Part shown: positions 6,837-59,310 of the stretch, in pieces
Layout: every line of letters begins with the position of its first letter
Numbering within the stretch: the first letter of the stretch is position 1
Virus record (IMG/VR): IMGVR_UViG_3300041411_000129
Coordinates: 186,001-250,000 of that record
Length of the DNA stretch: 64,000 bases
Reading direction: 5' to 3' (one strand)
Program-made: the position numbers and the translations under genes
Notes under the pieces: model-generated
Databases searched by the model: none
What the model was told of the DNA's origin: nothing
The model's input: only the letters and a program-made list of their open reading frames with translations

Positions 6837-6863
6837 TTAGGATACACAAACACTATCATCAAC

Positions 6864-6876
6864 GACCGTGGAGGTC
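6864..6876 (+). promoter_or_regulatory. SD-caging hairpin (copy 1 of 9)
   Basis: GACC-GTGGA-GGTC ending 4 nt before ATG 6881. Confidence 0.75.
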
Positions 6877-6880
6877 TGTA

Positions 6881-7261
6881 ATGAGCATTGAATCTGCATT
6901 CAAAATTGGCCTCGGTGTAATCGGCCTTGGCATCGCTGCCGTAGGTTGTTATAAATCGTACCAATCGTATCAGGAACAAAAGGATAAAACTGATCGCTCG
7001 ATCCGTGAGTCCGAAGAGAAGATCAAAGCCGCGCAAGCTAAAACTGAACGTGCTCGTAAAGACGCTCAAGAAAGCATGCGTAAAACAGATGCATGGCGTA
7101 AGGCTGATCAAGCACGTCACGAAGAAGTGATGGCTGGCTATCGCAAAGACCAAGAAGAACTGGATCGCTACAATGCGTACTATAGCGAACTGCTTGCCGA
7201 TCTGGAAGCTGGTCGCATTACTCCAGATGAACTCGTTAAGAAAATCAAAGCTTATAAATAA
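6881..7261 (+). CDS. N-terminally anchored coiled-coil protein
   Basis: TM helix then K/E/R-rich helix; similar layout at 24672 and 47873. Confidence 0.85.
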   Translation: MSIESAFKIGLGVIGLGIAAVGCYKSYQSYQEQKDKTDRSIRESEEKIKAAQAKTERARKDAQESMRKTDAWRKADQARHEEVMAGYRKDQEELDRYNAYYSELLADLEAGRITPDELVKKIKAYK

Positions 7262-7266
7262 TAATC

Positions 7267-7279
7267 GCCCGAGGAGGGC
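7267..7279 (+). promoter_or_regulatory. SD-caging hairpin (copy 2)
   Basis: GCCC-GAGGA-GGGC before GTG 7289. Confidence 0.7.
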
Positions 7280-7288
7280 ATTGCGTCC

Positions 7289-7972
7289 GTGAAAAAGAAC
7301 GAACTGAAGAAACTATATAACGATTACTTGGTGCGTGAGCATTTGCAAGCACAAGATGCCGTTGTGGGTTTTGGTGGGGCTTTGGTAATGATGGGTCTTC
7401 GTAAGGAGACCAGTGACATGGACCTGGATGTATCGCCGTACTTCTTCGAGATCAATCGTCGTCGGGGTTATCCGATGCACGATGCTCTCGTTGGTAAATG
7501 TATCGACGTTAATGATCGGATCTCGCTTCATGCTGGGTTGCCGATGAAGACAGTGGAGATCGAAGGGGTGTGGTGTTACGCTCCTGAGATCCTACTGATG
7601 CAGAAGCGTCGTATGCTTCGGTACAAAGGTCGTAAGCCTGAGAAGATTCCTCAGGACCTGCTGGACATCGAAGCTCTGGAGAAATATCTGAAGATCGATC
7701 TTCCAGTAGGTGGGCGTCCTTATCCGGGTAGCACTAACGATCTGCTGATGGGGATGGAGTTGACTCCTGAAGAAGAACTCTTCTACGAGCGCCTGCTTCG
7801 CCATCACTGGGCATTCCGGACTGGTCCGAAGTATCAGCACGACTTGAAGGTTGACCGGTTGCTTTCGGTTGATGCGGCAAAGATGAAGGGTAACTACCTC
7901 ATCCTGCTGAATCGCTATCGCTACCGTCATCGCAAAGAACAAGCAAAGCTACAGCTGCAACAATCCGCTTGA
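7289..7972 (+). CDS. Pol-beta-fold nucleotidyltransferase-like protein
   Basis: GFGGALV..G..KETSDMDLDV (hG[GS]..DxD) and distal K..QDLLDI. Confidence 0.6.
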   Translation: MKKNELKKLYNDYLVREHLQAQDAVVGFGGALVMMGLRKETSDMDLDVSPYFFEINRRRGYPMHDALVGKCIDVNDRISLHAGLPMKTVEIEGVWCYAPEILLMQKRRMLRYKGRKPEKIPQDLLDIEALEKYLKIDLPVGGRPYPGSTNDLLMGMELTPEEELFYERLLRHHWAFRTGPKYQHDLKVDRLLSVDAAKMKGNYLILLNRYRYRHRKEQAKLQLQQSA

Positions 7973-8037
7973 GTTATTGGGGAGCTTCGGCTCCCCTTTG
8001 ACTTACCTTTTATTTTGTCCAAAGAAGAAGCCAACGT

Positions 8038-8589
8038 ATGTCTAAGAAAGCAAAGATTGCCATGATTCTGGCCTCCACGATCAATGGTGAGATCGGCTAC
8101 AAGAACACCATCCCGTGGAAGCTCAAAGGCGATCTGCCGCGCTTCAAGGATCTAACCAACGGTAACGTCCTGATCATGGGTCGTAGTAGTTACGAATCGC
8201 TTCCAGGTCCTCTTAAGGGCAGGATCGTTATCGTCCTCACTCGTGATCCAGCCTTCGCATCTGAAGTACACGATCCAGAGAACAACGTCTACAGCGCCAG
8301 CAGCCTCCCTGAGGCTATCGAGAACGCACGTACGTTCAAGACCCAGGTCATCTTCCTTGCAGGTGGCGCTTCGATCTACGAAGAAGGCATGGGCATCGCA
8401 GACGTTGTTTATCTGACGCTTGTCCACAAGCACGCTCCAAAGTACGACACTCGCGTTAAGAACATGCGCTTCCCTGACGACGCGTGGACACAGATCGACT
8501 ACAGACATGTATTCGAACCGGACGCAGAGTTCCCTGAATTCAGCAACCCTTCCCACACCTACCACACTTTCGAACGTATCGAGAAATAA
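8038..8589 (+). CDS. folA: Dihydrofolate reductase
   Basis: IG..NTIPWKLKGDLPRFKDLT, LIMGRSSYESL, LAGGASIYEE. Confidence 0.95.
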   Translation: MSKKAKIAMILASTINGEIGYKNTIPWKLKGDLPRFKDLTNGNVLIMGRSSYESLPGPLKGRIVIVLTRDPAFASEVHDPENNVYSASSLPEAIENARTFKTQVIFLAGGASIYEEGMGIADVVYLTLVHKHAPKYDTRVKNMRFPDDAWTQIDYRHVFEPDAEFPEFSNPSHTYHTFERIEK

Positions 8590-8598
8590 GGATATCCC

Positions 8599-9513
8599 AT
8601 GCTCAGCATTCCTAGTTACCTGATTGACACCTGCTTTGCCTTTACTGATAAAGGCTGGTATCCACTCCACATGCTGGCAATGGAAACCAGCCCTAACCGC
8701 ATCAACGTGATCGTTACAGTTGCTAACGTCAAGATGATGCCTCATCACTTCCCGTTCGATGTGATGAAGTCACAAGAGCTGAAGAAGCGCACTCTGTGGG
8801 AGCGCGTTAAGCAGTTCTTCCTGAAGTTGATCGGTAAGACTGATATCGAATCCCGTCCAGTCGATCCGGCCAAACCTGAGTTCACTGTCGAGTTCATGCC
8901 GCTCGAAGATCTGCTGGACGATCTGGCCAACAGTAAGGCTCGCGCCGTTGAGATCGCCAGCTACGCCGACGTCTCCAGCCAACTCTGGATGGGTAGTCCG
9001 TTTGAAGACGATCCTCGGTTTGCTCAGATGTACGAAGGCTTCCACAATCAACTGATGGCGGCAGCTGCTTTGGGCGTCAACTGGGTCGTGGTTGAAAGCG
9101 AGTACATCAACCAAGCATTCTACCATCGCGACAACTTCCGTAAGCATGTCGAGGCTGTGGTTCGTTCCCGCTACGCCTTCTTCTGCAAGTCGGTCTGCTT
9201 TGACCTGAACCATGCGATCAGTTACCTGCCAGCAAACATGCAGGAACACGCTCGACTGGTATTGGGGTACGAGCCAATCTCTCCAGCGGCTGAAGCTGGT
9301 CTGCTGGCGTATTGCAGTCGTGTGACTGAGAACGGTCCGAAGGATCAACACATCCACACTGAGGGCGTCACTGAGTCGTTCTGGAAGATGCTGAAAGAAT
9401 ATCAGGAACTCCTGAAGCCTGAAGTTACTACAGCGAAAACAATCGTCCAGAACCATTCCGGTAAGGGCGACAATATCGTAAAGCTCGATAATACGTACAA
9501 GGTCAGGAAGTAA
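8599..9513 (+). CDS. Hypothetical protein
   Basis: 304-aa ORF with AAGGA SD. Confidence 0.85.
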   Translation: MLSIPSYLIDTCFAFTDKGWYPLHMLAMETSPNRINVIVTVANVKMMPHHFPFDVMKSQELKKRTLWERVKQFFLKLIGKTDIESRPVDPAKPEFTVEFMPLEDLLDDLANSKARAVEIASYADVSSQLWMGSPFEDDPRFAQMYEGFHNQLMAAAALGVNWVVVESEYINQAFYHRDNFRKHVEAVVRSRYAFFCKSVCFDLNHAISYLPANMQEHARLVLGYEPISPAAEAGLLAYCSRVTENGPKDQHIHTEGVTESFWKMLKEYQELLKPEVTTAKTIVQNHSGKGDNIVKLDNTYKVRK

Positions 9514-9625
9514 CTATCGGCATACAGAGGCGGGAATTCCCGCCTCTTATGTCATGCGCTATAAATAAATTCAGTAACACATTACACACTTGAATCCACA
9601 ACGACATTAGGAGTCTTCAGCAATA

Positions 9626-10672: not shown

Positions 10673-11168
10673 GCTTATCACCAGCCCTCTTACCACCGGC
10701 GTGGATGATCTGGTACTGCCGTGGGAGACAGCAGTACCGTTATTCCGGATGCATCTGGCTAGCCTAATGCTCAAGCGTGGGATGAGTGTGGTTGAGCTTA
10801 CTGAGAAGCTCAGTGACTTTAAAGACACCACCCTCCTTGAGGAGCTCTTTAAAGAACTGTTCGCCGATGACGCGCCTAAAATAGCAATCTCTATTGCAGA
10901 TAGGCGTTACGAAGCGACTATGTCGTTGAGCATAGCCTGTAACGAAGGTGTCATCCTCAACACAGACCTCACGCCGCGGACTCCAGTCGTTAACGTGGCT
11001 GAGCTTACGATCGATGAAGTTGTGGTCGCTATCGCCGAAGCTTATCCAGATTACACTGTTTGGTGTGACGGAGATGAGCGCGTCTATGTCGACGAAGGTG
11101 ATGATGACCCGAACCTAATGAGCGTTAAAGACGCTTATCAGAAATACATCGTCGAAACCGGTAAGTAA
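10665..11168 (+). CDS. Hypothetical protein (possible HTH-like segment)
   Basis: LMLKRGMSVVELTEKL. Confidence 0.75.
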   Translation: MSKLITSPLTTGVDDLVLPWETAVPLFRMHLASLMLKRGMSVVELTEKLSDFKDTTLLEELFKELFADDAPKIAISIADRRYEATMSLSIACNEGVILNTDLTPRTPVVNVAELTIDEVVVAIAEAYPDYTVWCDGDERVYVDEGDDDPNLMSVKDAYQKYIVETGK

Positions 11169-11804: not shown

Positions 11805-11881
11805 TCCGCGATAGCTCAGTTTGGTAGAGCAAACGGCTGTTAACCGTTGGGTCCCTGGTTCGAGTCCAGGTCGTGGAGCCA
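11805..11881 (+). tRNA. tRNA-Asn(GUU)
   Basis: Canonical cloverleaf, loop CTGTTAA, G73, encoded CCA. Confidence 0.95.
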
Positions 11882-11896
11882 ATTTCTTGTTGTAAT

Positions 11897-11974
11897 GGTG
11901 GGCTTAGCTCAGTTGGTTAGAGCAGCGGCGGGCTTTGCTGTGTGTCCTAGGTTCGAATCCTAGAGTCCACCCCA
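11897..11974 (+). ncRNA. tRNA-His-like RNA (G-1:C73) with non-canonical anticodon loop GGGCTTT
   Basis: Intact acceptor GTGGGCT/AGTCCAC, D and T arms, CCA; no Y32/U33/R37. Confidence 0.8.
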
Positions 11975-11981
11975 TATTCTC

Positions 11982-12070
11982 GAGACTGTAGCACAGTGTT
12001 AGTGCGATCAGCAGGCGTGGTAATTCTCGTCGGCTGGAATGCGTGGGTTCGATTCCCAACGGTCTCACCC
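11982..12070 (+). ncRNA. tRNA-like RNA with expanded anticodon arm
   Basis: GAGACTG/CGGTCTC acceptor, GCAC/GTGC D stem, TTCGATT T loop, 20-nt insert in anticodon arm, ends ACCC. Confidence 0.7.
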
Positions 12071-12106
12071 CATTTCTTTGCAGGGATGCGTAATCGAGTA
12101 TTAAGC

Positions 12107-12781
12107 ATGTCTGTTGATATCAGTAACTATCTGATCGCTACACCACTTCCAGTATCTGAAACCAATCCAGTCGCCTTAGAGCTGCTTGGATCTCTGGCAT
12201 TGATTCAATGTCCTGAGGTTGTTTCTCAGCTGGAAGATGGGTCTGTTCAATTCACCGCACCTACTAAAGGTGCGTCCAGTAAGAGTACTCACCGTACTCG
12301 CACTGAATGGAAAGAACCTGAGTACTGGGCGTTGTCTAGTGCAGCTAAGCACTGGAGTCGCCAGACGATGACTGTTACTAAAGTCAACTCTGCTCAGAAG
12401 GTGGTGGTTGCACAGATTCACGTCAAGGATGCTACAACGCCTCCTTTGAAAGTGTTCTGGAACAAAGGTAAGTTGACGATGGGTTTCCGCGGTAGTTTCG
12501 CCGATCCTACAATCGTTAACTATACCCTCCATACCGACGTACCCTTGGGCGTTCCGTTCAAGATCAGTATCGGTGTGACAGCCAGCGGTTCGGTGTCTGT
12601 CAACGCATCATGTCAAGGGGTTCCTTCCCTAAAGAACGCGTTGAAGTTGAGCAGCACTTGGTTTGACCGCGTACTTCAGTTCCATGGCGGCGTCTACAAC
12701 CAAGTCGACTACACCGATCTTACCTCTGACGAGGATGGTTCGATCTGCATTATCAGTGAGTTGTCTACAACTCACGAATGA
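12107..12781 (+). CDS. Polysaccharide lyase family 7 (alginate lyase-like)
   Basis: RTRTEWKE, QIH and QFHGGVYNQ match the three conserved PL7 strands; upstream part of the ORF-track call overlaps a tRNA-like RNA, so start set at ATG 12107. Confidence 0.85.
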   Translation: MSVDISNYLIATPLPVSETNPVALELLGSLALIQCPEVVSQLEDGSVQFTAPTKGASSKSTHRTRTEWKEPEYWALSSAAKHWSRQTMTVTKVNSAQKVVVAQIHVKDATTPPLKVFWNKGKLTMGFRGSFADPTIVNYTLHTDVPLGVPFKISIGVTASGSVSVNASCQGVPSLKNALKLSSTWFDRVLQFHGGVYNQVDYTDLTSDEDGSICIISELSTTHE

Positions 12782-12787
12782 TTCAAT

Positions 12788-12939
12788 GACTTCTATAGCT
12801 CAGTTGGTAGAGCGTCGTCACTCTCTTTAGGTCGCGGGTTCGAGTCCCGTATCCCCAGCAACGGGGATTAGCTCAGTCGGTAGAGCAGAAGAAAATTACG
12901 AGACGAAGGTCGTAGGTTCAATCCCTGCTAGAAGTCCCA
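12788..12939 (+). ncRNA. Nested double tRNA: outer cloverleaf containing a circularly permuted complete tRNA
   Basis: Acceptor ACTTCTA pairs with TAGAAGT at the end of the second unit; ATCCCC/GGGGAT hairpin; swapped anticodon stems TCGTC/GACGA and GAAGA/TCTTT. Confidence 0.85.
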
Positions 12940-12944
12940 ATTAA

Positions 12945-13020
12945 TGATGCAAGCCTGCGCCCGACACTAAGAGCCCGACGATAGTCATATAGCTCACTAC
13001 GTTGGCCGCAGGCGGCATCA
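12945..13020 (+). ncRNA. Rod-like spacer RNA A
   Basis: TGATGC/GCATCA, GCCTGCG/CGCAGGC, CCGAC/GTTGG, GAGC/GCTC, GAC-GATA-GTC. Confidence 0.6.
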
Positions 13021-13028
13021 CCCTACAC

Positions 13029-13105
13029 GCGTTCATAGTTCAGCTGGTTAGAATACTCGCCTGTCACGCGAGAGGTCGGGGGTTCGAGTCCCCCTGGACG
13101 CGCCA
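13029..13105 (+). tRNA. tRNA-Asp(GUC)
   Basis: Canonical cloverleaf, loop CTGTCAC, G73, CCA. Confidence 0.95.
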
Positions 13106-13121
13106 TATTCAAATGCTTCAT

Positions 13122-13248
13122 GATTCGCATAGCTCAGTGGTAGAGCGCCCCCACAACGGTTCGACTCCGTACGCATCCATCCTTCGGTTTGGGTGTGACC
13201 TGGATAACATGGGGGAGGTCGATGGTTCAAGTCCATCTGTGAATCCCA
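13122..13248 (+). ncRNA. tRNA-like RNA (G-1:C73, CCA) with permuted T-arm/acceptor module in the anticodon loop
   Basis: ATTCGCA/TGTGAAT; CCCCC/GGGGG; inner ACGG-TTCGACT-CCGT plus CGCATCC/GGGTGTG. Confidence 0.8.
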
Positions 13249-13254
13249 ATTCAA

Positions 13255-13322
13255 TGATCCTTGCAGCGGCTGCGCCTGAGTAAATGCTGTCTTAACTTGA
13301 CGTTACGGCGTCAAGAGGATCA
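13255..13322 (+). ncRNA. Spacer RNA B
   Basis: TGATCC/GGATCA closing helix; TTGACG/CGTCAA hairpin. Confidence 0.5.
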
Positions 13323-13332
13323 CCCGTTACAC

Positions 13333-13418
13333 GGAGAGGTTCCCGAGCGGTCAAAGGGATCAGACTGTAAATCTGACGCCTAACAGCTTCGAAGGTTCGA
13401 ATCCTTCTCTCTCCACCA
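13333..13418 (+). tRNA. tRNA-Tyr(GUA)
   Basis: Type II cloverleaf, loop CTGTAAA, A73, CCA. Confidence 0.95.
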
Positions 13419-15045: not shown

Positions 15046-15055
15046 GGGGGGGGGG
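15046..15055 (+). repeat. G10 homopolymer at RBS position
   Basis: TAA-G10-TGTA-ATG. Confidence 0.85.
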
Positions 15056-15059
15056 TGTA

Positions 15060-15419
15060 ATGTTCGTACCTTTCAAAGTCCCTGACCTTGAAGGCGCTAC
15101 AGAGGCCACACCAGCTCGAGTATGGGTTGGTCTGGTCGATGTAGTGAAGACCTTCAAATGGGCGCTTGTAGGAGCTGCCAAGCAGAAGCAGCTCAGCTTT
15201 AAGCAAGCCACCGAACTGCTCAACGATCCTACTACGCCAGAAGACTGGCAGGTGGTTCGTGAATTAATCCAGATTATGTTTTCTAAACATCCGGAGGGGT
15301 ACATTCTTAAGCGATCCGTCGGCCTTGGTACTAAAGAGACGTTGAACGTCAGACTCAATCGAGTCGGTAAGTGCAAGGTTAAGCTCAACATCTATTCGGT
15401 TAGGTTAGGGCGCTACTAA
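15060..15419 (+). CDS. Hypothetical protein
   Basis: Operonic ORF. Confidence 0.75.
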   Translation: MFVPFKVPDLEGATEATPARVWVGLVDVVKTFKWALVGAAKQKQLSFKQATELLNDPTTPEDWQVVRELIQIMFSKHPEGYILKRSVGLGTKETLNVRLNRVGKCKVKLNIYSVRLGRY

Positions 15420-16652: not shown

Positions 16653-16707
16653 GCAGTATTTCTCTGTATAGGGAGTGAAAGGGAGACCCGAAGGTCTCCC
16701 AGTTAGA

Positions 16708-18951
16708 TCACTTGAAGATAACTTCGCAGGTATCGCCGTTGCAGGCGATGGCACCCATGGTGTCAACTTCGGTGTACGTTTGCTTCTTCAGCTCATCGGA
16801 GAAGTCGATAGGCTTCAGTGCGCGGGTGATGTTCTCCCACTTGTGAAGGTTATAGACATCCTTCAGGCAGAAGGTCATCAGCTCGATGTTGCCACCGAAG
16901 TAGTTGTTGGCAAACTTCTTGGCACGACGAACCCAGTCACGAGGCAGCAGGTGTTCGGAATTGTCGTCTTCGAAGGTCATGCCGAAACCTTGAGCAGTGT
17001 CGCACGCAGCCCAGAGGTTGTTGGCGAAAGCCTTCATGCCGTCAACGATCAGACCCGATGCAAACATTGCACCTTCGCCGTACTTGGTCATGATTTCCTG
17101 AGCAGTCAGGACTTCAGTGAACGGAGCCTGAGCGTAAGCCTTGTCACCGGCGCCTGCCATCAGACTGATACCAGCGAAGTACTGACGGTTGTCGAAGATG
17201 TACTGCTCGACCTCGGCCCATTCTTCGTCAGTGTTGCCGACAGAGATGGTATTCGAGATATTGTGGCGGATGCGTTTGTCGACCGACAGCGAATCGTCGC
17301 TACCGTGTTCGATCCAGTGTTGTTGCGCCAGCTTCACGTATTCCAGCTGTTTGACGCCCAGCAGGTCTTTCTTGAAGATAGCGGTTTCACTGGCCACGAT
17401 AGGGAACGATACAACCAGAGACTTGCCGGTTGGGTCCCAAACGGACTTGTCAACCATTTTCGGGTTATGTTCCAGGAACAGCGGCATTACGGTTTCCTGG
17501 TCAGTCATCTGCACGTTGCGGAAGTAGCGTGCGGAGTGAGCGCCGTGGATACCGGAGTCAGTGCCCAGCAGAACAGATGCGTTGCCAGAAGGCTTGGTAG
17601 TAGTCGCACGAGGAGCCGGGTTGATCCCGATCATCTTGGCGATCTTCTTGTTCCAAACCAGAACCAGCTCAGCGCCGGCCTTCATGTTCGCTTTGTCGAA
17701 CAGAACGTCAGGGCTGGTCATCCAGCCAGTGATGGAGCAGCCCAGGAGGGCTTCACGTTCGGTGATCTCACGGGTAGCATCACCGAGGTAGGTGAAGTTC
17801 GTGTAGCCGGCTTGCAGGGTGCCCAGGATGGCGCTGGCCTTGCACATGCGGAACAGGTTTTCTACCGTGGTGATCTGTGCGCCGTTGCCTTCAGTCAGGT
17901 TGCAGAACTGGAAGCCAGAACGACCATCTTTGGTGTAAGCACGCAGACCGATTTCAACGCAAGGGTTGAAGCCTTGTTCGGTGTCTTCAGCGAAGATGAA
18001 ACCAGGCTCGCCGAACTGACGTACCGACTTCATGATCGCAGCCCATTCATCACGGGTCAGATCTTTACGGATCAGCAGAGCGGAGTTGTTCGAACGACCA
18101 CGTTGCGGGTTGGCGTCGAACCAGTTACCGGTCTTGGCAGTCATCATCTCGATGTCATCTTTCGAGAAGATGCAGATGGTGGCAGCGCGACGGATACCGC
18201 CGGACAGAACAGCGTCAGCCATGTGCATGACGAAGTCATACGCGTGGATCGGCTTGAGGTTCAGTTCAAGATCAGGGTGAGCGATACCGTCCAGCAATTC
18301 ACGGCATTTCTCGATGGAGCGTTGCAGGCCGTCTGGACCTGGGGCTTTGAAGCCGCCGGAGATCAGGGCGCCGCGTGGGCGGATCTGCGAGTAGTCGAAG
18401 TGGACTTGCTTGCCCTGGTATTCAGGGAAGGTGCCACCATCGATGAAGTACGAAGACAGCAGCACGCCGAATGCGTCAGCCCAGCCTTCGATCGAATCAG
18501 GAATCTGGAAGACCTTGGCTTCGTCGCCAGAAGGTGCGGTGATCTTCGGCAACTTGGCGATGTGGTGCTTCTGTACAGAGAAGCCTACGCCGCAACCGGC
18601 CAGCAGCAGGTACATGGCGTGTTGGAAGAACTCAGCACGGTCGCAGTAACTGAACGAGCAGTTGTACATGCGAGCTTCGTGTTGGAAGATCTGTGGACCA
18701 CCGAATTGCAGAGCGCGCTGTGCGCCCAGTACTGCCTTGTCCTTGTAAGCCTGTTCAGCGAATGCAATCGCTTCTTCCAGCTCAGGAGTCATCTTGTCCG
18801 CGTATTTCTCGCGGTGCATGTTCATCACACGCTCTACAGCTTCTTCCCAGGTTTCATACCGCCCGTGCTGCTCAGACCAGCGCGAATACCCCATTACGAA
18901 CTTGGAGTCCGACAGCATGGCTTTGGCGATTGGTTGGAAATTGAAATCCAT
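16708..18951 (-). CDS. nrdJ: Class II (adenosylcobalamin-dependent) ribonucleotide reductase, monomeric RTPR type
   Basis: GCGVGFSV, VLSGGIRRAATI, FNPCVEI, FCNLTE, TTKPSGNAS, C-terminal CxxxxC; no nrdB nearby. Confidence 0.88.
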   Translation of the reverse strand: MDFNFQPIAKAMLSDSKFVMGYSRWSEQHGRYETWEEAVERVMNMHREKYADKMTPELEEAIAFAEQAYKDKAVLGAQRALQFGGPQIFQHEARMYNCSFSYCDRAEFFQHAMYLLLAGCGVGFSVQKHHIAKLPKITAPSGDEAKVFQIPDSIEGWADAFGVLLSSYFIDGGTFPEYQGKQVHFDYSQIRPRGALISGGFKAPGPDGLQRSIEKCRELLDGIAHPDLELNLKPIHAYDFVMHMADAVLSGGIRRAATICIFSKDDIEMMTAKTGNWFDANPQRGRSNNSALLIRKDLTRDEWAAIMKSVRQFGEPGFIFAEDTEQGFNPCVEIGLRAYTKDGRSGFQFCNLTEGNGAQITTVENLFRMCKASAILGTLQAGYTNFTYLGDATREITEREALLGCSITGWMTSPDVLFDKANMKAGAELVLVWNKKIAKMIGINPAPRATTTKPSGNASVLLGTDSGIHGAHSARYFRNVQMTDQETVMPLFLEHNPKMVDKSVWDPTGKSLVVSFPIVASETAIFKKDLLGVKQLEYVKLAQQHWIEHGSDDSLSVDKRIRHNISNTISVGNTDEEWAEVEQYIFDNRQYFAGISLMAGAGDKAYAQAPFTEVLTAQEIMTKYGEGAMFASGLIVDGMKAFANNLWAACDTAQGFGMTFEDDNSEHLLPRDWVRRAKKFANNYFGGNIELMTFCLKDVYNLHKWENITRALKPIDFSDELKKQTYTEVDTMGAIACNGDTCEVIFK

Positions 18952-19173
18952 TGTTTAGCTCCGATGCTCAATATGATGACGTGTAGTTAAGGTGAGTTGA
19001 TCCCTAATAGGACCTGTTCTTCGGGTTTATTTTTACGGGTGTTTTTCTTGTTGGCCTATACTATCTTTGACTCGATTTTATACGTTAAAAAGTTACCACG
19101 ATGGATGATTGTTATAGGCCTAAATTCCAATGGCTCTTTATTTCTTTTAATAGATCAGGGAGTATACAGATCC

Positions 19174-45992: not shown

Positions 45993-46003
45993 GGGGGGGG
46001 GGG
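45993..46003 (+). repeat. G11 homopolymer at RBS of spanin gene
   Basis: TAA-G11-TAAC-ATG. Confidence 0.85.
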
Positions 46004-46831: not shown

Positions 46832-46936
46832 CATACAGGCCGGGGAAATCCCCGGCCTTATGTCTGCGTACTCAACTTTTTTATGGTCATACATTGTCGG
46901 GGTACATAAACGCTACGAAAGCAAGGGAGGTTCATC

Positions 46937-47158
46937 ATGCTTAACGAATACGCTACAAATGGCGTTAGTCGTGGTGAACTGCTTAACAGGCACTCCCACG
47001 CTACCGTCATGTTTAAACGCGCTATGCGTCTGCACGGCGTTAACTCTAACGAGGCAAAGCACTGGGATGGTCTCTTGAACGAACTGGAGAAGTATCTCCA
47101 CTCTAAAGGAATCATCCGCATTGACCACAAAAGCTTTTTGATCACCGAGGATAACTAA
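46937..47158 (+). CDS. Hypothetical protein, paralog of 47671
   Basis: FKRAMRLHGVNSNEAKHW vs FERAMRTHGINSEQANHW. Confidence 0.8.
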   Translation: MLNEYATNGVSRGELLNRHSHATVMFKRAMRLHGVNSNEAKHWDGLLNELEKYLHSKGIIRIDHKSFLITEDN

Positions 47159-47233
47159 ACAGTTGTCTTCTGGTACAGAACTGCTACAATGGACTCGTTC
47201 CAAAGTAGTAGTGCAACACCCCGTGTAACTAAC

Positions 47234-47246
47234 GACCGTGGAGGTC
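47234..47246 (+). promoter_or_regulatory. SD-caging hairpin (copy 3)
   Basis: GACC-GTGGA-GGTC before ATG 47250. Confidence 0.75.
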
Positions 47247-47249
47247 AAG

Positions 47250-47543
47250 ATGTCGTATGGAGACAAGTTCAGCTACGACGAAGAATTCGTCGCTCTTTCA
47301 TCTGGCTTAGGTCAGGCGGTACAGGAGCTTCGAGATCGTCGAAACGAACTGAACGAGAGCTATCGGTTGTTAGGAGCGGAGCGCATGACAATGCGCTTGC
47401 AAGGCTTAAGTACTACGGACATTGATGTTAAGATGTCTGAAGTGATGCAGGCAATCCGTGAGATTGGAGCTAAAATTGATTCCACTCAGTCCGCCCACTT
47501 AAGTTACTTGCGAAACTGTCAGGTTGGTTATACTGACAGGTAG
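47250..47543 (+). CDS. Coiled-coil hypothetical protein
   Basis: Heptad-rich. Confidence 0.75.
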   Translation: MSYGDKFSYDEEFVALSSGLGQAVQELRDRRNELNESYRLLGAERMTMRLQGLSTTDIDVKMSEVMQAIREIGAKIDSTQSAHLSYLRNCQVGYTDR

Positions 47544-47603
47544 CTGTAGGAGACGGGGGTAACACCCCGTCTTTTTTTTGTCTGAATAATCGTAATGAAA
47601 AAG

Positions 47604-47620
47604 ATTACAGTCACACATAG
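47604..47620 (+). promoter_or_regulatory. Putative promoter ATTACAGTCACACATAG
   Basis: Identical to 6820-6836. Confidence 0.6.
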
Positions 47621-47670
47621 TCGACGTAGTGAAGCACTTCATTTACCCGACTCTGTAAAGGACTATCGCC

Positions 47671-48056: not shown

Positions 48057-48069
48057 GACTGAGGAAGTC
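48057..48069 (+). promoter_or_regulatory. SD-caging hairpin (copy 4)
   Basis: GACT-GAGGA-AGTC (compensatory T-A pair) before ATG 48074. Confidence 0.7.
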
Positions 48070-48343: not shown

Positions 48344-48356
48344 GTCCGAGGAGGAC
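48344..48356 (+). promoter_or_regulatory. SD-caging hairpin (copy 5)
   Basis: GTCC-GAGGA-GGAC before ATG 48361. Confidence 0.75.
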
Positions 48357-48933: not shown

Positions 48934-48994
48934 CCCGCAACAAGAGAGCAGCTAATCCCTGCTCTCTTTTTTTTACCCTAAAAGGAATACCCCG

Positions 48995-51014: not shown

Positions 51015-54000
51015 TCACTTGATGCTACGTTCCATCCACGTCAGCAGAGCGATGATTGTGTCCTTAGCAATCACGTCTGGATGAGGTAGACCTTCCACGA
51101 AGACTTGACTAACACCCTGGTGATACCACTTATCGTAGAAATCCATGTACAGGGGATTGTCGTAATCGTAGATAGCGTCACTGAACTCAGACCCATCCGA
51201 ATGATCCAGCCAAGTGAACCAGTAGTCCTTCTCATACATCGGAAGGAGCTGCTCGATCAACTTAACTGCCTGTAGAATCTCAGCTTGTGTCAACGCCTTG
51301 ATCGTTTCAGGAGCCTTCACTGGAGTTTCGCGACTGTCAATCCAAATGTCGAATTCACGTTTCTCTACCTTAGTAGTGAATGCCGTGTGTCCGCCGATAG
51401 AATGAGTAGGTTTCAGATCAACGATAGGGGTTGGGATTTTCTTGAAGTCGGCGATAGCCTTCTCCCCCAACTCCTTAACCTTATCCGCATCATCCGCCTT
51501 GATCGCCGCGATAATCTTCGGTACTACACCTTTGTAGATCGATTGAACTGCGTCGTTCATGGCTTTCAATTGACCATGGAACTTATCACACAACCGACTG
51601 GCGTCACCTACAGCGCTACTGACCGCAGGAATGGAGTCCAAGAACTTACCGTTCAGCGAGAGTGCCTGAGCGATACCACCACTCGATACCGTGCTATTGA
51701 AAGTCTGCTCCGACAACCATTTGCTATTGCCGAAGTATTCTTTCAGGTATCTGTCAATACCTGTCGCATCGAGCATGTTGTGTTTTTCTTTAATGACGGC
51801 CTTGTTCCTGGCTTCATCCATCTTCTTCTTTGGATCGCCGACGATCAGATTTTTAATGCTCTTCATCATGTCGGAGAAACCTTCAAAGGAAGGCGGAATG
51901 ACTTTAATCTGCACAGAGTAGCCGTGCAGTGCCTGCCTGACGTCAACAGGTACGCAACGAACGATGTTCTTGCTGACTTCGCCTTGAGTCTTGTACTCAC
52001 CAGACAATCCATTGACTGGGTTGTAGTTTGCCATCCAACCATCTTTGACGTCCGGTTTGATCGTGTACAGGAATACCTGCAACGCATGAACGTCAGTAAT
52101 AGTCAGAGGTTCGTTCGACTCGATCTCGATACGACGGCCAGTGAACTTGTAACGGTTGAGTTTGAACTTCTTCTCGATAGCCGAGGAGATACCCAACATC
52201 ACCGCCGTGTCCTTGTCGTCAGCAGCGTACAGCCATTCATTAGTCTCGCACTTATCCCAACGCACGATCTCACCACTACGTTGGAAGCCAGGCAGAAGCT
52301 CGCCTTGCTTGAACGCAGAGCCGTGGTAGAGGTATTGCGGCAGATCTACTTCAGGTTCTTCCTGTACAGCGTACGGCGCAATGGTGTCGCCAACTTCACG
52401 GGAATAAGCAGCCGATTCCGAGTTCCAGCCTTCACCACCGCCACGATGCATGTCGCCTTGGAAGACGCCCAGCAGATCAGCAACGAACGACCCTAAGTCA
52501 GCCATGAAGTCGAACACTTCCAGAGACAGAGTCTCGGTGTCCACGTTCTTGATGCCGAGGATAGATGCGGTCATTTCAGCCGACCACGTCAGGATGTCGT
52601 TACTGCGGGTGGAGATGTTTGGAGCATCGCCAGTATCCAGCAAGAAGTCGAAGACGAATACTTCACTGTCTTGACCCAACCGGGCAGCACGAGCGATTGT
52701 CTGTGTGCGGATCGCATCACGGAACGGTTGGTTGAGCATCAGGATGGTGTTTGCAACGGTCAGTGGTACGGCCGTAGACAAACTCTGGAATGTAGCGACC
52801 AGAGGATTGAGGTCCTCATCCTTGTAGTACTTGGCCACGATGGTTGGTAAGTCCTTATTGGTCTCACCGTACACCTTCGCTGGAGTATACCCATCGTGGT
52901 ACAGTTTGTCGGCAGCAGCTTCCAGCACTTCAACGTAACTGGTGAAGATCAGCGTCTTCTTCTTAGCCGCATCGATGTACTTCTCGAGATCGATGTGCGC
53001 CAGCATATCCAGGTGGCATGCACTGCGGGCCTTACCAAGCACCCCGCCGAGCGCCTCACCCATGATTTTCAACTTGACATATTTAACTACACTGCGGGCG
53101 CCTTTGAACTCAGCTTTCAGAGAACCATTCAGCCTTGGCATGATGGTCTTCAGCTCGTACCGATTACAGAGCTGAGCCTCAGCCTTCATGGTCATCGGAT
53201 CAAATCCGCCAGATACAGTTGCGAAAGCAGATCGATAAGCGTTGAACTCACGACGATCAAGATCAGTACGAAGAGTCTTCTCAAATTCATTGAGACCTTC
53301 CTTGTACTTATCTTCGTAGAACTTCCGGTTCTTCTCGTAGTAGTCCTTGCGTTCATCAATGAACTTACGCATCCGAGCGCCGATGGCTTCCAACGTATAG
53401 TCGTTACCATTAGGCATCTTCACCATGACCTGTTCCACAGTCACCACTGTGTCTACCACGTCCTGTTTAGGAACGTGATACTTCAGGTGACCGATGCGGT
53501 TACGGAGAATGTCGTTTGCGCGTTTAGCGTCCTTGCCGTAGATCTTACGGAAGGCTTCTTCGCAGTTATCATCAAAGTACGGATCGACACACTTAAGGAA
53601 AGGAATACATTCCGATCCCATCGCTTGGATTGGTGTACCGGACATCCATAGGCAGTAAGCGATAGTCGGCATCTTACACATCTCGACCAATAGCTGGGTG
53701 CGGTCAGCGGCAAGACGGTTGAAGTTGTGCGACTCATCGACGATGATCATGGCGTCTTTGAATTCGCGAGGGTTGGCTTTAACGAAGTCGAAGATCGTTT
53801 GGATCGATTCGTAGTGGCAAACGTAGAAGTGCTCGTCCAGCGTCGGGAGACGACCTTCAGTACTCACCCAGTAACGACGCTTGGTCATCATGATGTCTTG
53901 GATGGTATCCTTCCAAACACGCTCTGCGGCGTTCTTAGGAGTGAAGACGATAACCTTAGGCGCATGTAGTGCCTCGCTCAACACGAGAGCTGTAACAGTC

Positions 54001-54470
54001 TTACCGGTGCCTGCGCCAGCATCGAGCAGATAACCTTTAAGCTTGTAAGCAGGGACCATCCGACCGTACAGTTGAGCGAACTCACGCTGGAAAGGCTTCA
54101 GTGGGAATGGAACCTGATTGTCCACTACAGACATGTCAGTGATCGACTTGACATCACGGTCTACGTCACCGAGCCAAGTCTTCTCACGTAGCTCCTCGAT
54201 GACCTTAGCCAGTACACGCTTCGGCGTACGGGTCTGCTTGTCATCGTACAGCGTTTGACACATGTAAAGGAAGTCGAATCCGAAGAAGTGACGCATCTTG
54301 AATTCGCTACTTCGAACATTCTGGAACATGTACTTGTAGAGAGCGTTGGTTCCCCAGAGACGATACACGTCCTTGAAGAACAGCATCGTACTGATACCTT
54401 CCACTACAATGAAATCACGGGTAGTGGTTACGTCCACTAATCCAAGACGCCGCCTTAATCCTGCTAACAT
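51015..54470 (-). CDS. SNF2/SF2 helicase with about 500-aa C-terminal extension
   Basis: DAGAGTGKT, IVDESHN, MSGTP, QTIARAARLGQ. Confidence 0.88.
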   Translation of the reverse strand: MLAGLRRRLGLVDVTTTRDFIVVEGISTMLFFKDVYRLWGTNALYKYMFQNVRSSEFKMRHFFGFDFLYMCQTLYDDKQTRTPKRVLAKVIEELREKTWLGDVDRDVKSITDMSVVDNQVPFPLKPFQREFAQLYGRMVPAYKLKGYLLDAGAGTGKTVTALVLSEALHAPKVIVFTPKNAAERVWKDTIQDIMMTKRRYWVSTEGRLPTLDEHFYVCHYESIQTIFDFVKANPREFKDAMIIVDESHNFNRLAADRTQLLVEMCKMPTIAYCLWMSGTPIQAMGSECIPFLKCVDPYFDDNCEEAFRKIYGKDAKRANDILRNRIGHLKYHVPKQDVVDTVVTVEQVMVKMPNGNDYTLEAIGARMRKFIDERKDYYEKNRKFYEDKYKEGLNEFEKTLRTDLDRREFNAYRSAFATVSGGFDPMTMKAEAQLCNRYELKTIMPRLNGSLKAEFKGARSVVKYVKLKIMGEALGGVLGKARSACHLDMLAHIDLEKYIDAAKKKTLIFTSYVEVLEAAADKLYHDGYTPAKVYGETNKDLPTIVAKYYKDEDLNPLVATFQSLSTAVPLTVANTILMLNQPFRDAIRTQTIARAARLGQDSEVFVFDFLLDTGDAPNISTRSNDILTWSAEMTASILGIKNVDTETLSLEVFDFMADLGSFVADLLGVFQGDMHRGGGEGWNSESAAYSREVGDTIAPYAVQEEPEVDLPQYLYHGSAFKQGELLPGFQRSGEIVRWDKCETNEWLYAADDKDTAVMLGISSAIEKKFKLNRYKFTGRRIEIESNEPLTITDVHALQVFLYTIKPDVKDGWMANYNPVNGLSGEYKTQGEVSKNIVRCVPVDVRQALHGYSVQIKVIPPSFEGFSDMMKSIKNLIVGDPKKKMDEARNKAVIKEKHNMLDATGIDRYLKEYFGNSKWLSEQTFNSTVSSGGIAQALSLNGKFLDSIPAVSSAVGDASRLCDKFHGQLKAMNDAVQSIYKGVVPKIIAAIKADDADKVKELGEKAIADFKKIPTPIVDLKPTHSIGGHTAFTTKVEKREFDIWIDSRETPVKAPETIKALTQAEILQAVKLIEQLLPMYEKDYWFTWLDHSDGSEFSDAIYDYDNPLYMDFYDKWYHQGVSQVFVEGLPHPDVIAKDTIIALLTWMERSIK

Positions 54471-54575
54471 GGTAATCCCCGTTGTTTCGAAGTAGTGGAG
54501 GTAAATGACATAAAATGTGTCTCTACCTATTCGAGTGATTTACAAGCATACATCATTGAACTAGATAACCCCAAT

Positions 54576-54590
54576 CGACCGAGGAGGTCG
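54576..54590 (+). promoter_or_regulatory. SD-caging hairpin (copy 6)
   Basis: CGACC-GAGGA-GGTCG before ATG 54593. Confidence 0.75.
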
Positions 54591-54592: not shown

Positions 54593-55138
54593 ATGTCTGA
54601 GTTAAAAGATCCGTACGTTTTGTTTGAAGCACTGGTAGCAATTTCTAAGGGCTGTACCAACGTAACTCAAGCCAAGAACATCGCAGCACAAGCACTTAAA
54701 GACTATAGCGCTGGTGATGTTCGCCTAGCCGTAAAGTCTGGCGTCGATAAGGTTACTGGCGCTGTCTTCCAGAAGGTCACTCCGGGGATGTATACGAAAC
54801 CCGGTAGCAATCTCACTAGTTACGTTCTGGACATTCCTTATAACGAAGAGTGCGAATATCGCTGCGTGTATGTCAGTTACCGCAACGGTGATTCCACTCG
54901 ATTCATTCTTGAGACTCCTAAAGGCGTTGATACTAACGTCCTCAAGAACGATCTCAAAGATGCTGGTCTCGGCTGGTATCTACGCAATAATCCTGATTTC
55001 AAATACTGGATTCTCGAGGATGTCGCTCGGACCGCAATTGAAGCGGGTTTCAAACCAACCACTCCGGTAATCACTATCCGGGAGTGGAACCATAACAAAC
55101 GTTTCCGTCATGGCTACATTGTAGTGGCCAAACACTAA
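54593..55138 (+). CDS. Hypothetical protein
   Basis: 181-aa ORF. Confidence 0.8.
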   Translation: MSELKDPYVLFEALVAISKGCTNVTQAKNIAAQALKDYSAGDVRLAVKSGVDKVTGAVFQKVTPGMYTKPGSNLTSYVLDIPYNEECEYRCVYVSYRNGDSTRFILETPKGVDTNVLKNDLKDAGLGWYLRNNPDFKYWILEDVARTAIEAGFKPTTPVITIREWNHNKRFRHGYIVVAKH

Positions 55139-56531: not shown

Positions 56532-56849
56532 TTAGAGTTCGGACTCAGGGATGTCAACCATCGACACTGTTTGTCCAGCCAGCTCGTGCGTGCAGTCGCT
56601 GAGGAATTCCCACTGCCCGTTACGAATGAAGCTGTGGCAAACAACCGCTTCAGTGCAGAACTTATTGAATTGAACCATGATGCTTGGCGAATACGTCGGC
56701 ATGTTGACGTTACCATCCCACTGCCACTGCTGATTACTATCACTCGGTTTATCTACTGCGATGTGGTGCATCCACTTACAGCCTGGGCAATAAAGTCCAT
56801 GCATGAAGCCTGCGAAGAGTTCGATCTTAGGTGAGAGTAATTCGCTCAT
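56532..56849 (-). CDS. DUF6527-like Cys/His protein
   Basis: CPGC..H...W.WDG....PTYSPSI...CHSFIRNG..EFLSDCTH.LAGQTV. Confidence 0.7.
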   Translation of the reverse strand: MSELLSPKIELFAGFMHGLYCPGCKWMHHIAVDKPSDSNQQWQWDGNVNMPTYSPSIMVQFNKFCTEAVVCHSFIRNGQWEFLSDCTHELAGQTVSMVDIPESEL

Positions 56850-57317: not shown

Positions 57318-57328
57318 TCACTATTATA

Positions 57329-57665: not shown

Positions 57666-58055
57666 ATGGCAGAACGTCTCGTAGCAATTGTCCACATGCA
57701 CCAAACCGATTCAGACAAACACATGTTCGACTATAACGGTCGGATGATCCATATTTGCCCACGACCTTACAAAGAGGACTGTGTCCCAGTCGAGGTGGTT
57801 TACGTAAACCTGATTGGAGATCTGGTGATCGAGCGTGGTGATGTCTACATGCACGTCCTGAAACACGGTGATCAGGCCGGCTACTCTAAGGCTATGGCGG
57901 GTCCTTTCCGGATTGGATTCGAAGACCTTAAGAAGCGGTTCTATTTCCACTACCTCAAGAAAGAAGGCATCCATAAATGGCGGTGTCCTACAGACGACAT
58001 CGAACTGGCTTGGGAGCATGCTCAACCAATGCCGTATAAATCACAGTCAAAATAA
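57666..58055 (+). CDS. Hypothetical protein
   Basis: GGAG SD before ATG 57666. Confidence 0.75.
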   Translation: MAERLVAIVHMHQTDSDKHMFDYNGRMIHICPRPYKEDCVPVEVVYVNLIGDLVIERGDVYMHVLKHGDQAGYSKAMAGPFRIGFEDLKKRFYFHYLKKEGIHKWRCPTDDIELAWEHAQPMPYKSQSK

Positions 58056-58116
58056 TTACAGTCATACATTGCGTCAGTACATACACACAACGATATCCAT
58101 TCCGGATACGTTAAAC

Positions 58117-58129
58117 GACCGTGGAGGTC
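58117..58129 (+). promoter_or_regulatory. SD-caging hairpin (copy 7)
   Basis: GACC-GTGGA-GGTC before ATG 58133. Confidence 0.75.
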
Positions 58130-58132
58130 AAC

Positions 58133-58525
58133 ATGTCTGCAATCACTCTCGCTACTATCGAAGCCACCCTGCGCGCAGTACTGACTGCTCCTGAAGGCGA
58201 TCAAGTAATCACCTTCTCTCAAGGTGCTATCGACCAGATGAATGAAATAACTGACATCATCATCACCGCCACAGGCTACGATGAATCCAAGGTGTCTGAA
58301 GACGATCTGATTCTAGCCGCTTCTTTCGCCAGCTATTTCACCAAAGCCGCAGTTAGTGGTGTGGTTGTAGATGGGGTTATTCAGCCAGCCAAGGAAGAAG
58401 AATACCGTGCTGAGCTGGTGAAGGTAAAAGAAGTCTACAGTCAAGGCGCTGGCATGTGCGGCGTAGCTTTACCTGTAGTTCTTCTTTGCAAGCTATTCAA
58501 CGAACTGCCTAGCTTCACCCGTTAA
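58133..58525 (+). CDS. Hypothetical protein, tandem paralog 1
   Basis: ITLATIEATLRAVLTAPEG. Confidence 0.8.
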   Translation: MSAITLATIEATLRAVLTAPEGDQVITFSQGAIDQMNEITDIIITATGYDESKVSEDDLILAASFASYFTKAAVSGVVVDGVIQPAKEEEYRAELVKVKEVYSQGAGMCGVALPVVLLCKLFNELPSFTR

Positions 58526-58535
58526 TCAACCCAAC

Positions 58536-58548
58536 GTCCGTGGAGGAC
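58536..58548 (+). promoter_or_regulatory. SD-caging hairpin (copy 8)
   Basis: GTCC-GTGGA-GGAC before ATG 58555. Confidence 0.75.
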
Positions 58549-58554
58549 CGCAAT

Positions 58555-58947
58555 ATGACTACCGATAACATTACAGTTGAATCCATTGAAGCTCTGCTGC
58601 GCGATGTAATCACTGCGCCTACTGGCGCGCATCTGATCATCATTCCTGAGTCTTCCCTGAAACAACTTCAGGCAGTGAGCGATGCTTTCGTTGAAGCTTC
58701 CAACCTCGATGTTAACAACGTTGGCAAGGACGCTTTACTGGCTGCGAAGTTCGCGGCTGAGATGTACAGCAAAGACCACATCACCGGTGAGATCGTTGCC
58801 GGTGAATTGATCGCTTACGATCAGGAAGCATTGGACAAGAACCTCAAGTCCATTCGTGAACACCCAGACTTCGTCAATGAAGGCTTGGCGCTTACGATCT
58901 ACCTGATCAACAAGATCTTCGCTGAAGTTAAACAATTCCGTCGTTAA
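58555..58947 (+). CDS. Hypothetical protein, tandem paralog 2
   Basis: ITVESIEALLRDVITAPTG. Confidence 0.8.
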   Translation: MTTDNITVESIEALLRDVITAPTGAHLIIIPESSLKQLQAVSDAFVEASNLDVNNVGKDALLAAKFAAEMYSKDHITGEIVAGELIAYDQEALDKNLKSIREHPDFVNEGLALTIYLINKIFAEVKQFRR

Positions 58948-58957
58948 GGAGATTGCG

Positions 58958-59281
58958 ATGCTTGAATGGCTCCATGCACACGGCATAACGATCGTCTGCG
59001 TGCTTAACATCATCGCAGCCTCATCCATAATCTACGGAGTACTTGCCCGAAACTATTGGGCCAATGAAGAATCCCACGAGTACTGGGAAAGGGCTATCAA
59101 GAAGAAGTGTATTCAGATTGATAAGCTCTGTCAAAAGAAGGGGTACAAACTACGTCCAGCTGATGCAGCATTATTAGTCTGGGCTGCTGGACATTCCACT
59201 GTAAGGGAGTATACTCGTAAACAGCTGGAGCCGTATTACATTCAGCTGAATGACGTGCTACAACAGATCGAGAAACACTAG
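58958..59281 (+). CDS. TM-anchored hypothetical protein
   Basis: AAGGAG SD; N-terminal TM. Confidence 0.75.
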   Translation: MLEWLHAHGITIVCVLNIIAASSIIYGVLARNYWANEESHEYWERAIKKKCIQIDKLCQKKGYKLRPADAALLVWAAGHSTVREYTRKQLEPYYIQLNDVLQQIEKH

Positions 59282-59291
59282 ACTACCTATC

Positions 59292-59304
59292 GCCCGAGGA
59301 GGGC
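59292..59304 (+). promoter_or_regulatory. SD-caging hairpin (copy 9)
   Basis: GCCC-GAGGA-GGGC before ATG 59311. Confidence 0.75.
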
Positions 59305-59310
59305 AAATTT

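Follow-up and report, generated by a model that had tools for sequence, protein, structure and literature searches.

Why do nine small genes in one stretch of phage DNA carry their ribosome-binding sites inside the same short hairpin, and does anything besides the ribosome read it? The question arises from a 64,000-nucleotide stretch (hereafter the window), bases 186,001–250,000 of the IMG/VR contig 3300041411_000129 (253,921 bp), so that about a quarter of the genome was read. Judging from its sequence, the source is an uncultivated jumbo phage, which we place among the relatives of phiKZ because homologs of the protein encoded at 59311, one of the hairpin-headed genes, adjoin phiKZ-type internal head proteins, because the AlphaFold model of this protein matches proteins of phiKZ-like phages, and because of gene content. 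We call this genome A and its close relatives, with protein identities of 72–91%, B (IMG/VR 3300006051_000001), C (a 255,742-bp Logan contig) and D and E (Joint Genome Institute soil and rhizosphere contigs); L-numbers denote further contigs and loci that were compared, L005, L028 and L158 being parts of genome A outside the window. The covariation described below indicates that the hairpin is a real RNA structure under selection, and one that had not been described previously.

Nine Hairpins at the Ribosome-Binding Sites of Small Genes

The initial annotation of the window had listed nine copies, beginning at 6864, 7267, 47234, 48057, 48344, 54577, 58117, 58536 and 59292, and all nine were recovered there, each on the plus strand, which is the strand of the genes they precede. 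The consensus consists of A-N-C and a 4-bp Watson–Crick stem that encloses an N-N-G-G-A pentaloop (usually G-W-G-G-A), the element being 13 nt long; the loop contains the unpaired GGA of the Shine-Dalgarno (SD) sequence, the remaining G/A-G-N of which forms the 3′ arm. The hairpins had been said to end 2–9 nt before the start codon, and we found spacers of 4, 9, 3, 4, 4, 3, 3, 6 and 6 nt, respectively, a range of 3–9 nt. A search of the window with the pattern GNCYGWGGARGNC returned nine matches against 0.19 expected, and none of 100 dinucleotide shuffles reached nine; this pattern leaves complementarity free, and its two N positions were complementary in 9/9 copies. A covariance model run on both strands of the 64 kb scored the nine copies at 24.9–32.1 bits and the next match at 14 bits; as the model had been trained on an alignment that included the nine, the informative part of this result is the gap in score. 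A relaxed search of the window (three or more pairs, G-U allowed) found no further convincing copy. The bare architecture, any 4-bp Watson–Crick stem around NNGGA, occurred 11 times on the plus strand and nine times on the minus strand against about four per strand in shuffles; it is not rare by chance, and what is exceptional is the G+C-rich subclass placed at start codons. An A+U-only hairpin of like geometry at 3791–3803 (TATT AAGGA AATA), which precedes a gene at 3808 and has neither the G+C-rich stem nor the A-N-C flank, is probably a coincidence.

The copy at 6864..6876 (stem GACC/GGTC, loop GTGGA) precedes the ATG at 6881 of a 126-residue membrane-like protein and is identical in the ortholog of relative B, and that at 7267..7279 (GCCC/GGGC, loop GAGGA) precedes a GTG at 7289 (227 residues) and has in B the compensated form GGCC/GGCC with loop GGGGA. 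Hairpin 47234..47246 (GACC/GGTC, loop GTGGA) lies before the ATG at 47250 (97 residues); hairpin 48057..48069 (GACT/AGTC, loop GAGGA, SD GGAAG) lies before the ATG at 48074 (84 residues) and has the stem GACC/GGTC in B and C; and hairpin 48344..48356 (GTCC/GGAC, loop GAGGA) lies before the ATG at 48361 (190 residues). At 54577..54589 the stem GACC/GGTC, which can be extended to the 5-bp CGACC/GGTCG, encloses GAGGA ahead of the ATG at 54593 (181 residues); C and D share the GACC stem of A, and B and E have GACT/AGTC. The last three copies lie close together: 58117..58129 (GACC/GGTC, loop GTGGA; ATG 58133, 130 residues) is GACT/AGTC in C only; 58536..58548 (GTCC/GGAC, loop GTGGA; ATG 58555, 130 residues, a paralog of the protein at 58133) is GTCC in D as in A and GACC/GGTC in B, C and E; and 59292..59304 (GCCC/GGGC, loop GAGGA; ATG 59311, 148 residues, a family conserved in jumbo phages) is GCCC in B and E as in A, GACC/GGTC in C and TCCC/GGGA in D. 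The nine open reading frames (ORFs), of 84–227 residues, are mutually unrelated except for the paralogs at 58133 and 58555 (30% identity); with only this one pair among the nine genes, gene duplication was rejected as the origin of the repeats, which are thus not its relics.

Predicted fold energies of the nine hairpins ranged from −2.5 to −6.6 kcal/mol, and the hairpin was part of the minimum-energy fold of its ±35-nt context at 8/9 sites, 58536 being the only copy outside it. The term ‘SD-caging’ used in the initial annotation was therefore too strong, as the stems are weak and leave the GGA of the SD free in the loop; such stems are unable to seriously cage so strong an SD.

Compensatory Changes in the Stem

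The compensated variation that had been noted among the stems of the window holds equally between genomes, as each orthologous site in four relatives has a perfect 4-bp Watson–Crick stem, and for every hairpin-headed gene of the window the hairpin is present in every relative (B–E) that carries the gene. Across the five genomes there were at least seven independent stem switches at orthologous sites, with both arms matched, and no half-changed intermediates were seen. In an alignment of 44 sites (35 distinct), 140/140 pair cells were Watson–Crick, with no G-U and no mismatch; double changes occurred at 3/4 stem pairs, giving 18 compensatory cells in the 35 distinct sequences, and a control in which the 3′ partner was slid by 1–3 columns gave pairing at only 16–54%. 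The remaining, fourth pair, C-G, is invariant and is set by the GG of the SD. Where stem position 4 is U, the opposite SD base is A (giving GGAAG) and not a wobbling G, so that the GACT/AGTC variant keeps its pairing at the expense of SD strength; GGAA in place of GGAG was found in one of the nine window copies (48057) and in 7/35 distinct sequences of the close-clade alignment.

Because the half-sites covary rather than keep fixed bases, the pattern points to a folded single strand and not to recognition of DNA by a protein. Matches in sequence databases gave a similar picture: for the complementary 16-mers AAC-GACC-GTGGA-GGTC and AAC-GTCC-GTGGA-GGAC, 13/26 and 5/9 matches, respectively, were ribosome-binding sites of this phage family, against 0/4 and 0/10 for composition-matched, non-complementary 16-mers (GTCC...GGTC and GACC...GGAC).

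A Rigid Geometry with Additional Conserved Bases

Upstream of candidate starts in the family loci we collected 166 different GGA(G/A)G sites, 58 of which had all four flank positions paired. The others tracked a random binomial, with 29, 49, 22 and 8 sites having zero, one, two and three pairs, respectively, and so there was no excess of decayed three-pair copies. The loop geometry of two bases, GGA and then the stem accounted for 66 distinct instances, as against 1–11 for each of 17 other geometries. The loop had been claimed to be fixed, which is true of its GGA; however, loop position 2 may be any base in the relatives, and in one distant lineage (L038:2699, L038:6924 and L055:2461) a hexaloop, GACC GTAGGA GGTC, stands beside pentaloops. 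This lineage, the only clear variant of the geometry, shows that loop size is tolerated to vary a little.

In 65 distinct sites an unpaired A stood at −3 in 61/65 and a C at −1 in 56/65, loop position 1 was G in 62, T in two and A in one, and the ten bases 5′ of the hairpin were G-poor. The SD gave each of the 65 copies an asymmetric centre, and all lay on the coding strand 0–9 nt ahead of a start codon. The conservation of A(−3), C(−1) and the first G of the loop goes further than SD function or pairing would demand. An A at loop position 1 would pair better with the anti-Shine-Dalgarno sequence (anti-SD) than does the conserved G. The loop G might form a closing G...A pair, as in a GNRA-like pentaloop; for the A at −3 no structural role is discernible.

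Association of the Hairpin Genes with a Promoter Class

The motif ATTACAGTCAYACATWG is found at 6820, 47604 and 58055, with variants at 46881 and 54542, and each of the five is preceded by a terminator-like hairpin. The promoter-like motif ATTACAGTCACACATAGT at 6820..6837 (plus strand, as are all five) lies 38 nt before hairpin 6864 and just after the terminator-like hairpin at 6762–6783; the same form at 47604..47621 stands at the head of the unit that contains hairpins 48057 and 48344 and is closed by a terminator-like hairpin at 48942–48968. The variant TTATGGTCATACATTGT at 46881..46897 heads the unit 46937–47543, with a terminator-like hairpin at its end (47548–47575), a weak variant, ACAAGCATACATCATTG, at 54542..54558 lies 19 nt before hairpin 54577, and ATTACAGTCATACATTGC at 58055..58072 is at the head of a unit with three hairpins (58117, 58536 and 59292) and a closing terminator-like hairpin at 60513–60544. 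The terminator-like hairpins that close these units are those at 7979, 47548, 48942, 56505 and 60513. Within the promoter units 9 of about 15 genes have the hairpin, as against none of about 77 other genes of the window (Fisher p = 6e-9), and there is none before the Pfam-confirmed genes for dihydrofolate reductase (folA, 8038) and thymidylate kinase (tmk, 34319), as had been reported.

A second motif family, CACACATTAC, heads other units at 2871, 35141 and 57622, with variants at 9578, 19858, 24194 and 25969, and has ATTAC in common with the first. The initial annotation had tied the hairpin to the first promoter subtype and seen none before the first genes behind the second; both statements hold for the window, but the association is not absolute, since in L158 a hairpin at 10770 follows a CACATTAC-type promoter. 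Both families resemble the predicted early promoters published for phiKZ (TATATTAC) and EL (CCTACATTATY) (PMC7058600, Table 2), and such motifs mark the operons transcribed by the virion RNA polymerase (PMC7598289). As in those phages, the window has an AT-rich ATTAC/ATTAT motif (ATTACAGTCAYACATWG, CACACATTAC) upstream of small-gene operons and after terminators. The second family, which can also be written (C)ACACATTAC, likewise stands after terminators and is near the published EL/phiKZ early-promoter consensus.

Some leaders behind ATTACAGTCA promoters contain a second small hairpin, TATCC ATTCC GGATA, at 58094–58108 in the window and also at about 1785–1800 in L028, 1920–1937 in L005 and 1095–1112 in L020. 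Its stem covaries (ATAGCC/GGTTAT in L005, TATCA/TGATA in L020), and its loop UCC is complementary to the GGA in the loop of the SD hairpin 10–15 nt downstream.

Distribution in the Genome and in Distant Lineages

Beyond the window, genome A has at least six more copies (one in L005, two in L028 and three in L158), which brings its total to at least 15. The TTACAGTCAYACAT promoter and hairpin ribosome-binding sites occur together in more distant contigs as well (L038, L055, L103, L088, L131, L121, L134 and L137), and the 258-kb contig L088 has seven hairpins within 4.3 kb. Both elements are also present in L135, the sole hairpin of which is cut at the contig end, and in L136 there are hairpin sites but the promoter pattern was not matched. 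The hairpin family extends over a whole clade of uncultivated jumbo phages. Homologs of the 59311 protein with 20–28% identity have kept both the promoter and the hairpin in L131 and L137; in L131 the start of the homolog, at 5288, is preceded by the hairpin GACC TCGGA GGTC, and the hairpin at 5789 of that contig precedes a 47-residue ORF. Some relatives have additional, inserted hairpin-headed genes, e.g., at L029:338. The hairpin system is an old one, the member genes of which change with time.

In seven further viral contigs (L047, L058, L089, L104, L117, L122 and L126) the hairpins GACC GAGGA GGTC and TGCC GAGGA GGCA stand before start codons, behind a common CTTGGAAAACTAHC leader, and over the few kilobases compared no protein homology to the window was detected. 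The hairpin design may be wider than one phage family.

Searches for a Partner and a Precedent

No CsrA-, RegA- or RegB-family match was found by Pfam (E ≤ 0.01–0.05) among the 19 proteins of the hairpin units, which include no candidate for the CsrA-fold gene that the initial annotation had proposed to look for. The 148-residue protein encoded at 59311–59757 is one of a small family, 12 representatives of which were found among 1.8 billion proteins. AlphaFold gave a confident model of it (predicted local distance difference test (pLDDT) score 86.6), which had no match in the PDB (best template-modelling (TM) score 0.36); in BFVD it matched, with TM scores of 0.6–0.8, uncharacterised proteins of the Erwinia phages Simmy50 and Kwan, PhiPA3 (gp356), 201phi2-1 and RaK2. 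For the 54593 protein no lead came from the ESM Atlas.

A scan of the whole window against Rfam at gathering thresholds returned five tRNAs only, and a permissive scan of 58040–59330 returned only chance matches to small nucleolar and long noncoding RNAs. Searches of the literature for the exact motif strings retrieved unrelated primers only, full-text searches found no description of the motif, and SD hairpins were not described in the phiKZ transcriptome papers. An RNA thermometer, which we had considered, was rejected on two grounds, namely that there was no Rfam match and that the element stands before many unrelated genes.

Comparison with Known Phage Systems

In phage T4, RegA represses many early mRNAs. 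The T4 endoribonuclease RegB cuts GG*AG in early SDs and, acting alone, prefers a GGA that is unpaired and a fourth G that is constrained (PMC3014915). The target here would likewise be the SD of an early-type set of phage genes, and the hairpin provides the geometry that is reported to suit RegB alone best, with GGA in the loop and the next base forming the first pair of the 3′ arm; GGAG is present in 8/9 window copies (48057 has GGAA), and the early timing is suggested by promoter resemblance. The hairpins differ from RegB sites in that there is no A-rich GGAGRAYARAA context, GGAG being followed by G-N-C and a variable spacer of 3–9 nt, in that the GGAAG variants have no GGAG, and in that none of the 19 unit proteins matched the RegB family.

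The operators of the MS2 and PP7 coat proteins and of T4 RegA are further examples of sites, either a hairpin or a defined sequence, through which a phage protein represses translation at the initiation region, and recognition of such operators depends, as it might here, on stem geometry and a few unpaired bases. T4 gp43 also has an operator hairpin at the initiation region (PMC3014915). However, most of these operators serve one gene, and RegA serves many without a defined hairpin, whereas here one stereotyped hairpin serves at least 15 genes and the SD itself makes up the loop and the 3′ arm.

The GCCC GAGGA GGGC variant is, we presume, close in form to lambda boxB, which has a 4–5-bp G+C-rich stem and a G-N-R-N-A pentaloop and lies downstream of early promoters. 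In contrast to the present copies, which stand 3–9 nt before start codons, boxB does not overlap an SD, occurs once per operon beside boxA and acts in antitermination. A boxB function was therefore rejected, as was a relationship to the repeat hairpin of type I-F clustered regularly interspaced short palindromic repeats (CRISPR), the Csy4 substrate; both likenesses are of form only, and the position at the start codon argues against each.

A Candidate Operator and Its Alternatives

Jumbo phages related to phiKZ time their genes with their own RNA polymerases and, to our knowledge, almost nothing is known of control after transcription in them. Observed directly were the motif, its position and strand bias, the selection on pairing, the rigid geometry, the association with one promoter class and the conservation across lineages; an early timing of the genes, a trans-acting factor with its origin, and a direction of regulation are inferences. 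The reading that we favour, although we would put it at somewhat less than an even chance, is that the hairpin is an RNA operator at the ribosome-binding sites of an early-like gene set and is read by a trans-acting factor, probably one encoded by the phage. It is suggested by the rigid geometry, the all-or-none pairing, the avoidance of G-U even where the SD suffers, the conservation of unpaired bases and the confinement to one promoter class. The genes would lie in short units behind a phage-specific promoter of the phiKZ early type, the hairpin on their mRNA would be an operator at the translation-initiation region, and a structure- and sequence-specific factor would recognise both the stem-loop and the unpaired A at −3. 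Most probably this factor would be a phage-encoded repressor or endoribonuclease, functionally analogous to T4 RegA or RegB, the binding or cleavage of which would turn the gene set off, or tune it, as a block; without the factor, the 30S subunit would easily open the weak stem, the SD GGAGGU being the strongest type in the genome. The initial annotation had raised the idea of a phage-encoded repressor or activator, and the additional conserved unpaired bases would fit it. A more specific proposal, which we regard as possible and hold with greater reserve, is that this phiKZ-related clade has a dedicated post-transcriptional switch in which the hairpin, with its unpaired A at −3, tags at least 15 early mRNAs and a phage-encoded structure-specific RNA-binding protein or endoribonuclease, a RegA/RegB analogue of unrelated protein type, shuts off or licenses the whole set.

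A number of observations weigh against an operator, and several of them would suit a self-sufficient structured ribosome-binding site that has no dedicated trans-acting factor, an explanation that we consider nearly as likely as an operator, if doubtful when taken by itself. In such a site the GGA of the loop would be a toehold for the anti-SD, and a strong SD would be kept out of long-range structures, making translation independent of context; the hairpin may also keep RNases from the mRNA or from a processed 5′ end, and its uniformity would come from site-to-site copying and from selection that favours a 4-bp stem of marginal stability. No SD pairs better with the anti-SD than GGAGGU, about 12 genes of the window have a core of this GGAGG(U) type, the strongest there, and 9 of these are in hairpins; SD function by itself accounts for loop positions 3–5 and for the first two bases of the 3′ arm, and most of the conserved bases belong to the SD or to the stem. 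The weakness of hairpins that nevertheless appear in the minimum-energy fold at 8/9 sites suits this explanation too, and a G...A-closed, GNRA-like pentaloop would suit G-N-G-G-A, so that the loop G would need no protein. A 4-bp stem that is only just stable, or copying from site to site, could be the reason for the lack of G-U and for the invariant geometry, and several stem switches coincide with changes of flank and loop at orthologous sites, as copying would predict. No binding partner emerged from the 19 unit proteins, which had no relevant Pfam or PHROG match, or from the structure searches with the 59311 protein, the model of which matches only uncharacterised jumbo-phage proteins. Among RNA sequencing runs none was found that contains this genome, two wastewater runs aligned at 80% likeness yielding fragments of 30–190 nt only and no ends; the gene set is early-like by the resemblance of its promoters; and the 59311 homologs in L134, L135 and L136 have lost the hairpin and kept the SD, so membership of the set shifts over deep time. 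Yet a site acting only in cis does not explain why A(−3) (61/65) and C(−1) (56/65), which have no pairing or SD role, are conserved in deep lineages, nor why the GACT/AGTC variant sacrifices an SD base (GGAAG) instead of taking a G-U pair. Mere tuning of strength would also predict a range of stem lengths and loop sizes, whereas the class is all-or-none, and the restriction to genes of one promoter class is left unexplained.

The initial annotation had also suggested host RsmA or RsmE as the reader, and an operator for host CsrA/RsmA/RsmE would couple these phage genes to the Gac/Rsm or Csr state of the host. The architecture is the classic one, with a short stem, a loop of 5–6 nt that presents GGA and overlap with the ribosome-binding site: GGA forms loop bases 3–5 in 9/9 window copies and in the 65 distinct family copies, and the hairpin contains the SD and ends 3–9 nt before the start. 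High-affinity Csr/Rsm sites have as their consensus an A(N)GGAX hexaloop or an AGGGA/AAGGA pentaloop, the adenines of which are read specifically, and RsmE has a high affinity for A(R)GGA pentaloops that sit immediately on a stem (PMC4005645). Here, however, the first loop base is G in 62/65 copies and A in one, although the avoided A would also improve pairing of the SD, so that the loop is without the specifically read A of A(N)GGA and the suggestion was not supported. Nor does a second GGA appear to be conserved; the upstream GGA of some leaders (GGATAC) is replaced in the paralogous L005 and L020, and a GGA arises by chance too often for its presence to be telling. Moreover, the motif follows the phage lineage and its own promoter type, and Pseudomonas phage PaBG, the closest cultured relative found for one protein, is without the motif in its first 50 kb; we consider a host regulator of this kind improbable. 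Less probable still, and in our view very unlikely, is an element that acts as DNA, i.e., a site for a dimeric protein, a cruciform or a stretch of homology for shuffling cassettes, for which the position at ribosome-binding sites would be incidental. The copies are perfect, strictly Watson–Crick palindromes with no G-U, they flank small variable genes without annotated function, relatives have inserted hairpin-headed genes (L029:338), and repeated regulatory cassettes (PeSL cassettes) drive gene shuffling in T4-type phages. Against this stand the placement of 65/65 distinct copies on the coding strand 0–9 nt before a start codon, their asymmetric SD centre and the covariation of half-sites where fixed bases would be expected; recombination is possible as a side effect, yet it gives no account of the selection on pairing.

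The hairpin points to a coordinated step, in translation or in RNA stability, for an early-type block of genes. The dedicated switch considered above would add a previously unseen layer of temporal control in jumbo phages, and if a phage protein reads the hairpin the two would be a new operator–regulator pair and a compact, portable translational switch; if the hairpin acts by itself, it would be a natural design for a context-insulating ribosome-binding site. Either way it offers a sequence handle for finding the co-regulated gene set in genomes of uncultivated jumbo phages.

Relatives and Other Features of the Window

A megablast search with 14 kb of the window found no close relative among 50,697 GenBank phages, and tblastn gave only 25–30%-identical matches, for the reductase and a 547-residue protein, the best cultured match of the latter being Pseudomonas phage PaBG. 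In bases 1–50,000 of PaBG we found neither the hairpin ribosome-binding sites nor the promoter motif.

Five tRNA genes (Asn, Ser, Leu, Asp and Tyr) lie on the plus strand at 11805–13418. The ribonucleotide reductase gene (16675–18990, plus strand, 771 residues) was recognised by tblastn homology only, with no Pfam match, and is opposed by a 747-residue frame at 16708–18951 (minus strand), probably a shadow ORF, which a self-trained codon model favoured. Of the confidently predicted genes of the otherwise plus-strand window just two are on the minus strand, namely an SNF2/ResIII helicase (51015–54470, 1151 residues), with hairpin 54577 in the divergent region beside its start, and a BubE-family protein (56535–56849, 104 residues). 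Two ribosome-binding sites contain long runs of G, 10 at 15046–15055 before the gene at 15060 (TAAG10TGTAATG) and 11 at 45993–46003 before the gene at 46008 (TAAG11TAACATG), which could be slippage-prone expression switches or artefacts of assembly.

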